Part shown: positions 573 through 4,876 of the stretch, in pieces
How positions within the stretch are numbered: the stretch's first letter is position 1
How the letters are laid out: each line of letters starts with the position of its first letter
Assembly: GCA_937625935.1 (NCBI GenBank)
Contig: OW569362.1
Span: 434,001 to 498,000, forward strand
DNA: 64,000 bases
Source of the DNA: Tetramitus jugosus
Lineage: Eukaryota > Protista > Heterolobosea
Reading direction: 5' to 3'
Program-made: the position numbers and the translations under genes
Notes under the pieces: model-generated
What the model was told of the DNA's origin: nothing
The model's database searches: none
The model's input: the letters and a program-made list of their open reading frames with translations, nothing else

Positions 573-992
573 TCATTGGTATGATAATTTCTCTCTGGAA
601 ACTCTCCTGGATAACAGAAGAATATCATTGTGTTTGGTCAATAACATGAGCCATCTATAGATTGTGTAACCAATATGGCTCATTTGCTCCACCACTTCAC
701 TGTCGATATCTTCCAATTGACTTCTCACTCTATTGATTTGGTTTGGAGTAACATTCTCTGGTTCAATGTTCGAAACACGCCTCGCAATATCATCCCTGGC
801 CAGAAACTTTCTACATTCCCACCAATTCTGAACTTCACTGGAATACAGGATGAAGATGAACTGGGTGATCACTTTCACAAACTCCACAGGTGGTTGAGGA
901 TAGCCCATGAACAGTTCCCATGTCGAAGCCGGGGTCGAGTGAATCAAGTTCCTCAGTGTTTCAAAGGTCGATTCTACTTGACTCAACTCCAT
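573..992 (-). CDS. Stand-alone dynein heavy-chain stalk-head (microtubule-binding domain)-like protein, 139 aa
   Basis: Motif order GYPQPPVEFVKV...W-ECRKFL...NIEPENVT...V-QMS...IYRWL follows the dynein MTBD pattern (NPP-xVxxV...WxxxKxxL...FDxxNI...VxxxS...LxxW). ATG at 992, stop at 573, and no AAA modules on either side. Confidence 0.7.
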   Translation of the reverse strand: MELSQVESTFETLRNLIHSTPASTWELFMGYPQPPVEFVKVITQFIFILYSSEVQNWWECRKFLARDDIARRVSNIEPENVTPNQINRVRSQLEDIDSEVVEQMSHIGYTIYRWLMLLTKHNDILLLSRRVSREKLSYQ

Positions 993-1297
993 CGATTAGA
1001 TTCGATTCCAACAAAGAGTTTTCGAAACGTAAATTTGTGTGTCGGGTAACGGCAACACCTCGAAAATCTGATTGGGGAATTGCGGGAATATGATAGACCC
1101 AATCAAAATTGCATAAGCTTGGGCATTGCCCCCAAAAGACGTTTCTAGGCACTTTGAAATATCGAACGAAGGGAATCACAACACGCACGAAGCCACACAC
1201 CAACGTTATCGAGCGAAAGTTTCGAGCTCTAAAAAAAACTCACCTCACATCAAAAGCTTTTTCATCCCCAAAAACCAAACACCAGCAAAAACACAAC

Positions 1298-3328
1298 ATG
1301 CATCGCGTATTAGCAAGGTCATCTTCATCTAAACCACAATGTGTCCATCATTTGAATCGTCATCATTCATTCATCAACCATAGTTCATCCTCATCACTCA
1401 ACGTCGTAGCTCAACAACAACAGCAACAACAACAACCATTACGCACCCTTGCAAGATCTAGATCCATACACACAAACCAACAACAACAACAACAACAACG
1501 AAATGGTCATGACAACAACAAAAACAACCATCACCATCACAATAAAAAGAATGTTGTGTGGATGAAAGGAAGCATAAAATTTGCATGTGCAGCAGTAGGT
1601 GCCATTGCACTGTATGAATCACTTGTGGATGAATCATTGTTACGATCCGTGTTTTTAGCTGAAGAAGCAGTAGCAGAAGCCGCAGCAGCAGAACAAGAAA
1701 AAAATCAATCATCATCATTGACTACTACGGATGCTGAAAGTGAAAAAATCAAGTCATTACCAGAGTATACAAAAGCTCAAGTGGCAGAACACAAGACGAG
1801 TAGCAATGGTATCTGGGTGACGTACAAGGACGGTGTCTACGATATTACAGAATTTGTTGGTGTGCATCCTGGTGGAGATAAGATTTTGTTGGCTGCAGGT
1901 GGTGCAATTGATCCGTTCTGGAGACTGTATGCGATACATGAAAAGGAAGATATTAAGGAGATTTTGGAGGAGTATCGAATTGGTACGTTGAAGGCTGGCG
2001 AGTATGTTGCTCCATCGGCATCTGGAGCCAAGAAGAAGAAGACAAAGGTAAAGAGACATCATCATCATCCAAGAAAAGTTGTGTTTGTTGAGGAGGAGGA
2101 AGACGATGATGATGAAGATGAAGAAGAAGAAGATGATGAGAATGATGATCCATACAGGAACGAACCAGAGAGAGAAGCTGTGCTAAAGGTCAATACACAA
2201 AAGGCGTTCAATGCAGAGACACCGCCATCGATTCTGATTGATGATTTCATTACACCGAACGAGATTTTCTTTGTGAGAAATCATTTGCCAGTCCCAGTGG
2301 TTGATCATAAAAAGTATAGTCTTCAGATAACGGGCATTGGTGTCAAGGACGTCAAATTAACTGTAGAAGATTTGAGGACTATGTTTATTCATTACTCGGT
2401 GATAACAACGATGCAGTGTGCCGGAAATAGAAGATCTGAGATGAGTGCAGCGAAACCAGTCAAAGGTATCGAGTGGACGAGTGGTGCTATTGGAACTGCA
2501 GAATGGACCGGTGTACGGTTGAGAGATGTTTTGCAATATGCAGGCCTGGATCCAGAAAAGTGTGAGAACAATCCAAAGATTCGCCACGTTCAATTCGAAG
2601 GACTGGATCAAGATATGACACACACTCATTACGGTGGTTCTATTCCGATTGAGAAGGCCATTGATTTGCATGGAGATGTTATTCTTGCATTCCAAATGAA
2701 CGGAACTGAGATTCCAAGAGATCACGGCTTCCCAATCCGTGTCATTGTTCCAGGTCACGTCGGTGCGAGAAATGTCAAGTGGTTGGGCAAGATTGTAGTG
2801 AGCAGCGAGGAGAGCAAGAGCTTCTGGCAACAACATGACTACAAGGGATTTCCTCCAACGACTGACATTGCACTGCTGGATCCGAAGAAGGCTGCATCCA
2901 TTCAAGAACTTCCCGTACAATCGTCCATCTGCGAGCCACAGAATGACACATCAGTGGACGAGGATGAAGGTCATGTAAAAGTGAAGGGTTATGCATGGAG
3001 TGGCGGCGGTCGCGATATTATTCGAGTTGATATCACTGCCGATAATGGATACAACTGGATTGTGTCTGATCTGAAGAAACCAGTTGAACAGAGACCTGGA
3101 CGTGCTTGGGCATGGACTCCGTTCAAAGCTGAAGTGAAAATACCAAAGGAACACAATGGCGGCATGAGAATATGTAGCAAGGCTGTCGATGCCTCGTACA
3201 ATGTGCAACCAGAGCATGTGGAATCAGTTTGGAATCCAAGAGGTTTCCTCAACAATGTTTGGTCATGCGTCAATGTCACCATAAAGAAGAGCTTGGACGA
3301 CGAAGAAGAAGAAGCAGATGAAGAATAA
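1298..3328 (+). CDS. SUOX: Sulfite oxidase (animal-type: mitochondrial presequence + cytochrome b5 + Mo-cofactor + dimerisation domains)
   Basis: Heme motif YDITEFVGVHPGG; Moco motifs FFVRNHLPVP, QCAGNRR, DHGFPIRVIVPGHVGARNVKW; GYAWSGGGR; WNPRG. First ATG at 1298 (MHRVLARS), followed by an R/S-rich presequence and a hydrophobic stop-transfer segment. Confidence 0.95.
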   Translation: MHRVLARSSSSKPQCVHHLNRHHSFINHSSSSSLNVVAQQQQQQQQPLRTLARSRSIHTNQQQQQQQRNGHDNNKNNHHHHNKKNVVWMKGSIKFACAAVGAIALYESLVDESLLRSVFLAEEAVAEAAAAEQEKNQSSSLTTTDAESEKIKSLPEYTKAQVAEHKTSSNGIWVTYKDGVYDITEFVGVHPGGDKILLAAGGAIDPFWRLYAIHEKEDIKEILEEYRIGTLKAGEYVAPSASGAKKKKTKVKRHHHHPRKVVFVEEEEDDDDEDEEEEDDENDDPYRNEPEREAVLKVNTQKAFNAETPPSILIDDFITPNEIFFVRNHLPVPVVDHKKYSLQITGIGVKDVKLTVEDLRTMFIHYSVITTMQCAGNRRSEMSAAKPVKGIEWTSGAIGTAEWTGVRLRDVLQYAGLDPEKCENNPKIRHVQFEGLDQDMTHTHYGGSIPIEKAIDLHGDVILAFQMNGTEIPRDHGFPIRVIVPGHVGARNVKWLGKIVVSSEESKSFWQQHDYKGFPPTTDIALLDPKKAASIQELPVQSSICEPQNDTSVDEDEGHVKVKGYAWSGGGRDIIRVDITADNGYNWIVSDLKKPVEQRPGRAWAWTPFKAEVKIPKEHNGGMRICSKAVDASYNVQPEHVESVWNPRGFLNNVWSCVNVTIKKSLDDEEEEADEE

Positions 3329-3562
3329 AGTCTTTCTGTTTTGTCTATCTCACAACTTCATCTGTTGTACATTTTCATTTTCTCCGCCGAGATCGCGAAT
3401 TCTAATTCCCGCCTGGATGAGTTCCACAACCACAATCGATCTTTCCACTCTGGGGCAGAACTCCCTTGCTCGAAAAAAAACAATCGCCAGAAACTCACAA
3501 AGAAACAACAAGTAACAACCCATCCCCCATCTCTCCCTTATCACCCAACTACATTTTGAACA

Positions 3563-4876
3563 ATGGGTTTATTCAAAAAGTCATCGTCATCTGATACCAT
3601 TGATGGTTATGGAAGCATCGCCGATGAAGAACAACAAAACAATGGTTATTTGAGTCGTGTCAAGCAATATGTTGTGCCAGGTCGATTGAACACGACACGT
3701 ATTGCCTTTTCTAGTTTCCTTACCATTGGTTTCATGCTTGCCCTACTGTTGAGAGACGGCATCTTTGGTCTCACAAGTGTACCAGGCTTCCAATACGCCT
3801 GCGATCGCTACAGCGCAAAACTCAAAGTGAGCTGTTCGCCAAAATATGCCGTTTACCGCGTTTCTTTCTCACTGGTGTGCTTTTACGGATTTTTCGCGCT
3901 GTTGGCCAGTCGGATTTTTTGTGTCGGAGATAAGACACGATTGTTCATACAATACAAGTGGTTCTTGTTGAAGATTCCAGTGTTCTTGGGATTTTTGGGA
4001 TTGCCTTGGATTATTCCTGATGCCTTCTTTTACTATTTCGCATGGGTTGCCCTGTTTGCAAGTGGACTGTTTCTGGTGATTCAAATTGTGCTGTTGATTG
4101 ATTTTGCGTATGCGTGGTCCTCATCATGGCGCTCCAGTGATAATGAAGGAACAAACATCTGGGACATTTTACAACTCGTGTCTGCAATTGTGCTATTGTT
4201 GGTTGCTGTGGCGCTCATTGTGTTGAGTATTGTGTTCTTTGGTGCGGGTAGAACGTGTCATTTGAATCGATTCTTTGCACTGTTCACTGTAGCTGTGAGC
4301 ATTGTGTTGGTTGTGCTCTCCATGGCAAGACACAAGGGATTGTTGCCTGCTGCTGTTGTTGTGGGCTATGGCGCATTTTGTGTGTGGTCTGCAATGCTGT
4401 CTGATCCTAGCTCTACGTGCAACAGACTCAAGCACATTACATCAGGTGGGAAACTTCAGAACTCAAAGGCAAGTGAAATTACAACAGCAGTGTTTGGTGT
4501 TGTGATTGCTGTGTTCAGTTTGGTTCGTTGTACAGTTAGTACTGGGCTCAGCTTCAGTTCCTTCTTCAAGTTGTCACGCGATCCTTCTGATGAATCTAGT
4601 GAGAACAGTGAAAAGTTGGACAGAGAGGAGTGCAGCGAACTATTCTTCTCGCATTTGGTGTTCTTGCTCGGTTCTTTCTACATGGCCATGGTTCTCGTCT
4701 CATGGGACGTCTTGTACTACAAGGAGAACAACCAAACCAAATATCAAACAGAAGTCAGCAAGGCTGCCATGTGGGTCAAGATTGCCAGTCAATGGCTCAT
4801 GTTTGCCCTGTTTTCGTGGACTCTGCTTGCTCCAAAGATCTTGGGCAAATACAGAGACTTTGACGGCGAAGAATAA
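3563..4876 (+). CDS. SERINC: SERINC/TMS1 family multi-pass membrane protein
   Basis: AVYRVSFSL, IQIVLLIDFAYAW, SFYMAMVLVSW, WVKIASQW, WTLLAP...RDF; about 10 hydrophobic helices. Confidence 0.93.
   Translation: MGLFKKSSSSDTIDGYGSIADEEQQNNGYLSRVKQYVVPGRLNTTRIAFSSFLTIGFMLALLLRDGIFGLTSVPGFQYACDRYSAKLKVSCSPKYAVYRVSFSLVCFYGFFALLASRIFCVGDKTRLFIQYKWFLLKIPVFLGFLGLPWIIPDAFFYYFAWVALFASGLFLVIQIVLLIDFAYAWSSSWRSSDNEGTNIWDILQLVSAIVLLLVAVALIVLSIVFFGAGRTCHLNRFFALFTVAVSIVLVVLSMARHKGLLPAAVVVGYGAFCVWSAMLSDPSSTCNRLKHITSGGKLQNSKASEITTAVFGVVIAVFSLVRCTVSTGLSFSSFFKLSRDPSDESSENSEKLDREECSELFFSHLVFLLGSFYMAMVLVSWDVLYYKENNQTKYQTEVSKAAMWVKIASQWLMFALFSWTLLAPKILGKYRDFDGEE

Follow-up and report, generated by a model that had tools for sequence, protein, structure and literature searches.

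The question raised by this locus is whether the tip of a dynein stalk can exist as a gene of its own, separate from the motor, and what a protein of that kind could bind. Nearly all work on the dynein microtubule-binding domain (MTBD) has treated it as the regulated tip of a motor of 4,500 residues. In the heavy chain, six AAA+ domains form a ring, with the MTBD inserted between AAA4 and AAA5, and the affinity of the MTBD for microtubules is set by the registry of the stalk segments CC1 and CC2, which is driven from the AAA ring. The DNA analyzed here (the window) is a stretch of 64,000 nucleotides from Tetramitus jugosus (contig OW569362.1, positions 434,001 to 498,000), in which an earlier note, made from the sequence alone, had described a dynein MTBD encoded by a small free-standing open reading frame (ORF). 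Comparisons of sequences and predicted structures support the view that this ORF presents a known domain in a new architecture, namely a paralogue of the cytoplasmic dynein-1 MTBD that has been conserved and kept under selection.

The positions of the ORF and of its predicted parts are listed in Table 1. As the earlier note had stated, the ORF is small and complete, stands head-to-head with a sulfite oxidase gene, and has no AAA ring nearby. Its predicted product has a mass of 16 kDa, and the reading frame is closed by a stop two codons before the Met. Sulfite oxidase, with cytochrome b5 and Mo domains, is encoded on the plus strand from position 1299 onward and diverges from the ORF; the interval between the two genes is presumed to be a bidirectional promoter. 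No AAA or dynein motor domain was found within 7 kb downstream of the ORF or in the window flank on either strand, and no coding-like sequence was detected in any minus-strand frame of the ~250 bp that follow the stop codon. The ORF therefore departs from the architecture of a heavy chain by its length, by its own start and stop, and by the lack of adjacent AAA domains on both strands. A search of the source genome (eukaryotic, 26.35 Mb in 56 contigs) revealed a single copy.

Table 1. Window coordinates of the MTBD-like ORF, its predicted parts and the adjoining intergenic region
Feature	Position	Strand	Basis or remark
Stand-alone MTBD-like protein	573..992	minus	Complete ATG-to-stop ORF, 139 aa, stop codon included
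N-terminal helix, residues 3-18, corresponding to the last ~16 residues of stalk CC1	939..986	minus	AlphaFold helix; aligns to mouse DHC1 DLDKVEPAVIEAQNAV
Globular helical bundle, residues 22-120, corresponding to MTBD H1-H6 (P34-P35, W57, R61, R66, W114)	633..929	minus	Alignments, AlphaFold, Foldseek
C-terminal helix, residues 121-137, corresponding to H6 running into the CC2 stub	582..632	minus	AlphaFold helix 106-137; conserved to about residue 134
Variable tail, residues 133-139	576..596	minus	70-aa acidic tail instead in P0002; absent in P0003
Divergent intergenic region, about 306 bp	993..1298	.	Between the MTBD ORF and sulfite oxidase

The short orthologues in relatives that the earlier note had envisaged were found, all of them on metagenomic eukaryotic contigs and with the same start as the ORF. 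A word search yielded P0001 (94% identity, 139 aa), and an exhaustive search of 1.84 billion representatives added P0002 (57% identity, 204-205 aa) and P0003 (31% identity, 135 aa). The sole addition from a scan of metagenome DNA was a second contig of the P0002 organism. The resulting four-member family, three members of which are metagenomic, shares the Met, is conserved through residue 134 and has 35 invariant positions; P0002 carries a strongly acidic, low-complexity tail of 70 residues. Short MTBD proteins of this type (135-205 aa) thus appear, so far, to be confined to T. jugosus and three metagenomic relatives. Three further candidates (P0004, P0008, and P0014) were rejected as relatives, as their scores were merely summed from short, repeated low-score stretches.

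The identification of the ORF as an MTBD was approached with sequence profiles and with structure prediction. The Pfam search proposed in the earlier note did not recover the domain: no family matched the ORF at E ≤ 10, PF12777 included, and a six-frame PF12777 scan of the genome returned 12 heavy-chain loci, with the ORF not among them. PF12777 (MT) models the whole stalk of 344 positions, of which the ORF covers about 130. Compared as a single sequence with solved MTBDs, the ORF gave weak, positionally consistent matches (E 0.1-0.9). A profile built from the four short proteins alone matched dynein MTBDs in the PDB much better than by chance, at E values of 6.7e-6 to 1e-4, and its positions 2-128 aligned with residues 10-138 of 6RZB, a mouse MTBD construct of 149 residues. 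Dynein chains accounted for 28 of its 29 PDB matches, the remaining one being a designed repeat protein at E 0.96. Additionally, phmmer tied the ORF to PF12777-positive proteins with tandem MTBDs (E 1e-12 to 5e-4).

The hallmarks of the domain follow one another in the ORF in the expected order, with a PP motif opening H1, a Trp in H3, and a Trp in H6. In 24 aligned MTBD-type sequences, P34 and W114 never vary, and the conservation of W57 is at least 90%. In the C-terminal helix, conservation within the family extends through R129, R130, and E134. An AlphaFold model based on the mixed alignment of 24 sequences reached a pLDDT of 92.3, and its top Foldseek match was 3ERR (TM 0.81, rmsd 2.3 Å over 135 columns). 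A second model, which avoids circularity by using only the four family members, had a pLDDT of 88.2; its top 42 PDB matches were all dynein, the best being the microtubule-bound structure 6RZB (TM 0.70). Every confident Foldseek match of the two models was a dynein MTBD. The ESM Atlas, searched by language model and by shape, likewise pointed to PF12777 clusters. On the basis of these profiles and models, the ORF protein is established as a true dynein MTBD homologue with a predicted MTBD fold, as the earlier note had proposed in calling it a motor-less MTBD with the motif order of the stalk head and only short stubs of CC1 and CC2. As modeled, the product is shown to be the dynein stalk tip alone, comprising ~16 residues of CC1, the six-helix MTBD bundle, and ~17-30 residues of CC2.

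We then compared the ORF with the dyneins of its own genome. The 12 heavy-chain loci detected by the PF12777 scan would imply that the organism has flagella. When the ORF was searched against the genome, one heavy chain (G000:C33) was retrieved at E 4.6e-15, and the next dynein followed at 0.04; BLASTP of the ORF against this chain gave 25% identity at E 5e-20. The chain is cytoplasmic dynein-1 (DHC1): it scores 1933 bits to human DYNC1H1, and its score to the best axonemal chain is about 836 bits. The DHC1 locus (L023 22-9825, plus strand) is highly conserved overall. Its stalk and MTBD are the most divergent of the 12, with PF12777 scores of 73.6-78.6 bits compared to 97-296 bits for the others, and the MTBD is still of dynein-1 type (E 4.5e-13 to yeast and 4e-12 to mouse). 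An in-frame stop that six-frame scans show in DHC1 was considered as a lesion and rejected, as it belongs to a GT-AG intron (roughly 80 nt) that comes right behind the AAA3 Walker A motif.

A maximum likelihood tree (LG+C20+F+G4) was calculated from the short family, the 12 MTBDs of the genome, and 18 tandem-repeat MTBDs. In this tree, which was built without canonical DHC1 MTBDs of other taxa, the short family groups with the organism's own DHC1 MTBD with 100/99 support. Both share a Pro at the position of mouse K3298 followed by 'TW', the motif '(E/K)PE(N/D)' after H4, and the lack of an insertion before H6. These comparisons show, at the level of sequence, that the short family arose from a cytoplasmic dynein-1 MTBD and that its nearest relative is the divergent DHC1 MTBD of the same genome. 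The simplest reading is that the DHC1 stalk tip was partially duplicated in an ancestor of these protists.

The residues by which the ORF protein might contact microtubules were examined next. Dynein reaches the intradimer groove between alpha- and beta-tubulin with its helices H1, H3, and H6. Redwine et al. (2012) reportedly placed mouse K3298, R3306, R3342, and R3382 among the contact residues. In the family-profile alignment, R3342 in H3 is kept (ORF R66), as is R3337 in the same helix, which corresponds to R61 and is invariant in the family. The equivalents of K3298/K3299 (P21/A22) and R3306 (M29) in H1 and of R3382 (Q103) in H6 are lost. Of these positions, K3299 and R3337 are named microtubule contacts of the mouse dynein MTBD (bioRxiv 10.1101/590786). 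On the former microtubule face, the family-invariant residues P21, T24, W25, E102, S105, and H106 differ from canonical dynein.

The domain has also changed in charge. The acidic stretch EDIDSEVVEQ occupies ORF residues 94-103, and the domain has a pI of about 5.4; the four family members range from 5.0 to 5.6, with a core pI of 5.0-5.5 and a core net charge of -4 to -5. The organism's own DHC1 MTBD has a pI of 8.6, and the tandem-MTBD repeats have values of 9.3-10.1. The suggestion, made earlier from the acidic H5-H6 region, that the binding partner may have changed is therefore reasonable, given the acidity of the domain and the loss of two out of three basic contact clusters. The own DHC1 MTBD departs from canonical dynein as well, by the Pro at K3298, the 'TW' motif, and an Asn at the position of R3382. 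Because these losses are also present in that presumably functional domain, they are compatible with microtubule binding, and some of the contact losses need not abolish binding to the microtubules of this organism. A prediction of the complex of ORF residues 1-137 with the organism's canonical alpha-tubulin (1-435) and beta-tubulin (1-427) scored 0.00 and gave no verdict either way.

The genome contains two sets of tubulins, a canonical one (alpha L031, beta L033) and a divergent one (alpha L034, beta L035), whose alpha and beta have about 69% identity each to their canonical counterparts. In the divergent set, H12 of alpha is unchanged, beta differs at several positions immediately ahead of H12, and the C-terminal tails of both have changed. 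The divergent tubulins may be of mitosis type and may explain the odd DHC1 MTBD. That the DHC1-type MTBDs co-evolved with a special tubulin is a testable idea and not a result.

From the fold, the lost and kept contacts, and the missing motor, we infer that the protein either binds tubulin weakly and free of nucleotide control or has acquired another partner. We lean, tentatively, toward the first reading, in which the ORF protein is a non-motor ligand at the dynein-1 site. It would dock at the dynein footprint, the alpha/beta-tubulin intradimer groove, via H3, where both arginines are kept. As there is no AAA ring or long stalk by which the coiled-coil registry could be shifted, its affinity would be fixed and independent of nucleotide; this affinity would probably be low, since the domain is acidic and has neither the H1 Lys-Lys nor the H6 Arg. 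Such a small microtubule or tubulin ligand could compete with dynein-1 or tune its access. The relevant microtubules would be those used by the organism's own dynein-1, perhaps built of the divergent tubulin pair. Against a tubulin ligand speaks the acidic domain, which is a poor fit for the acidic surface of tubulin.

A more far-reaching version of this proposal, which we consider rather unlikely as a whole, is that a copy of the DHC1 MTBD became a separate 16-kDa protein in this amoeboflagellate lineage and would serve as an endogenous competitor for the dynein-1 site or occupy it, perhaps on the divergent, mitotic-type tubulins; that the MTBD is a reusable module independent of the motor; and that the tandem-repeat proteins arose independently elsewhere as microtubule-associated proteins (MAPs). 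If true, this would constitute a natural 'MTBD-only' regulator of a motor.

A near-equal rival to the tubulin ligand is a fold with a new function, a possibility to which we give slightly less credence. The MTBD bundle would have been kept and microtubule binding lost, and the acidic former face would bind another partner, such as a basic protein, a dynein subunit or regulator, or an LC1-like leucine-rich-repeat (LRR) protein. The acidity of all four members, compared to the basic MTBDs elsewhere, fits such a change, as do the loss of the equivalents of the H1 Lys-Lys, R3306, and the H6 Arg and the strongly acidic tail gained by P0002. The new family-invariant residues on the former microtubule face could define the surface for the new partner. 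However, both H3 arginines are retained, and the own, presumably functional DHC1 MTBD shows several of the same departures, which are hence compatible with microtubule binding in this lineage.

The surroundings of the ORF bear on whether it is a whole gene or a part of one. A small gene with two exons lies 255 bp downstream on the minus strand (exon 1 at 203-317, exon 2 at 1-84 plus 64 bp before the window start; L010 6936-7317). It has a GT-AG intron of 118 nt, and its product of about 87 aa is membrane-like; Pfam returned no match for either exon. The highly conserved stretch downstream of the ORF, considered as an RNA, was rejected as such and corresponds to this small protein gene. The genome is poor in introns, short GT-AG introns being present (roughly 80 nt in the dynein-1 gene and 118 nt in the small neighbor), and spliced genes were searched exon by exon.

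We take the ORF to be a free-standing single-exon gene because of the stops of its own in the family, the upstream stop, the conserved ATG of the downstream gene, the unconserved spacer, and the arrangement at the P0003 locus (L025). The alternative, that the ORF is one exon of a larger gene, spliced for instance to the small membrane-protein gene to give a membrane-anchored MTBD, appears improbable. It draws on the short GT-AG introns that the genome does contain and on the two-exon gene that comes next on the same strand, a neighborhood kept in the 57% relative, where the small gene is also found behind the MTBD orthologue (L024/L027). Yet each of the four orthologues has a stop of its own behind the conserved core, at the end of a tail that differs in length, and the downstream gene starts with a conserved ATG of its own; the spacer before this ATG is unconserved and bears indels. 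Moreover, the single visible donor/acceptor pair is out of frame. In L025, the MTBD gene lies 106 bp from a divergent neighbor and has its own stop, after which a different gene follows, encoding an unrelated secreted-type protein.

As judged from codon comparisons, the ORF encodes a protein under purifying selection. Between the ORF and P0002, pS is 0.80 (saturated) and pN is 0.25. The core of the closest pair, the ORF and P0001, has a dN of 0.016 and a dS of 0.050, and few changes underlie the resulting omega of about 0.32. Across the entire ORF, four synonymous and nine nonsynonymous codon changes separate the two, and the seven variable codons at the end account for four of the nine. The orthologues with the same start at 94%, 57%, and 31% identity, together with a saturated pS and a low pN, argue for a real gene, and the unconstrained fragment with dN/dS near 1 that the earlier note had weighed does not agree with these values. 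A non-functional relic or chance ORF, in the form of a decaying fragment copied from a dynein gene, could be suspected from the decayed F-box gene in this zone, the missing Pfam match, and the excess of nonsynonymous changes in the close pair, but is strongly disfavored, to the point of being hardly credible, by an ORF that is intact in four lineages, by the ratio of pN to pS, by orthologues that are not contaminating copies of one sequence, by the clustering of replacements in the last codons, and by the confident predicted fold.

Set beside the cytoplasmic dynein-1 MTBD (mouse DYNC1H1; 3ERR, 6RZB), the ORF product is likewise predicted to be a six-helix bundle between CC1 and CC2 (TM 0.70-0.81, so that the comparison with solved structures proposed in the earlier note came out in its favor), and it shares the hallmark Pro, Trp, and Trp positions and the H3 arginines. 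It differs in being acidic rather than basic, in having the basic contacts of H1 and H6 replaced, and in scoring below the PF12777 threshold. As the stalk, AAA ring, linker, and tail are missing, an ATP-driven change of registry could not take place. The closest functional analogue is the engineered isolated MTBD, made with short coiled-coil stubs or as a fusion to seryl-tRNA synthetase (3ERR, 3J1T, 6KJN/6KJO), the boundaries of which are almost those of the ORF. Isolated constructs of this kind fold and bind microtubules alone, which is established (bioRxiv 10.1101/590786). They are artificial and fixed in registry, whereas the ORF is a natural gene that selection has retained.

The statement in the earlier note that MTBDs normally exist only inside heavy chains of ~4500 aa is contradicted by complete non-motor proteins with tandem MTBDs and by clusters of the ESM Atlas outside dynein heavy chains. 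The tandem-MTBD proteins (P0005/P0016, P0006, P0007, P0009-P0013, and P0015) stem from metagenomic eukaryotes, contain 2-5 repeats and no AAA domains, and pass the PF12777 threshold. P0005/P0016 (L038 5001-7241) is a complete single-exon gene of 746 aa with five repeats, located among ordinary eukaryotic genes on a 678-kb contig. Like the ORF, to which they are similar at the phmmer E values given above, these proteins are non-motor and built solely of MTBD units. Unlike the ORF, they are basic and repetitive, and they stand apart from the short family in the maximum likelihood tree. The two groups are probably of independent origin, and the tandem-MTBD proteins look like an undescribed class of candidate MAPs.

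In the ESM Atlas, clusters with a predicted MTBD-like fold occur in contexts other than heavy chains (TM 0.76-0.90 by query). They comprise hypothetical proteins of 214 aa (TM 0.90), EF-hand proteins of 751 aa in molluscs, and proteins combining Impact_N and MT in oomycetes; these architectures are known from automatic cluster labels alone, and some of the clusters could represent pieces of heavy-chain genes. Their predicted fold resembles that of the ORF and is embedded in other architectures.

In the searchable literature, we found no description of natural MTBD-like non-motor proteins, whether stand-alone, tandem, or other. The ORF and the tandem-MTBD proteins together suggest that the MTBD is an independent evolutionary module, a view that we likewise did not find described there. 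A natural protein consisting of the tip only could serve as a minimal natural reagent for the behavior of the MTBD free of allosteric control, and the ORF protein might prove to be a dynein-1 inhibitor or a small MAP of a new kind. The relationship of this protein to the divergent DHC1 MTBD, together with the two sets of tubulins, makes the co-evolution of motor and track directly testable.

Some minor observations concern the surroundings of the ORF. Two plus-strand ORFs were rejected as genes, one at 211-570 (119 aa), which is antisense to the conserved small two-exon gene, and one at 675-1049, which is antisense to the MTBD ORF. An Rfam and tRNA scan of the flanks detected just a tRNA-His, 1.7 kb away. 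The dynein light chain LC1 is an LRR protein and binds an axonemal MTBD. In L025, an RNI-type LRR protein gene (3476-4342, minus strand) stands head-to-head with P0003 (4449-4856); an LC1-like synteny was considered and rejected, as this neighbor is confined to L025 and is absent at the T. jugosus locus. Finally, an F-box/LRR gene on the plus strand (L010 6501-6790, 500-211 bases before the window start) is truncated by an internal deletion of roughly 1 kb. The same gene is intact (ORF of at least 434 aa) in a ~97%-identical metagenomic relative (L011), and in T. jugosus it has decayed recently beside an intact gene.
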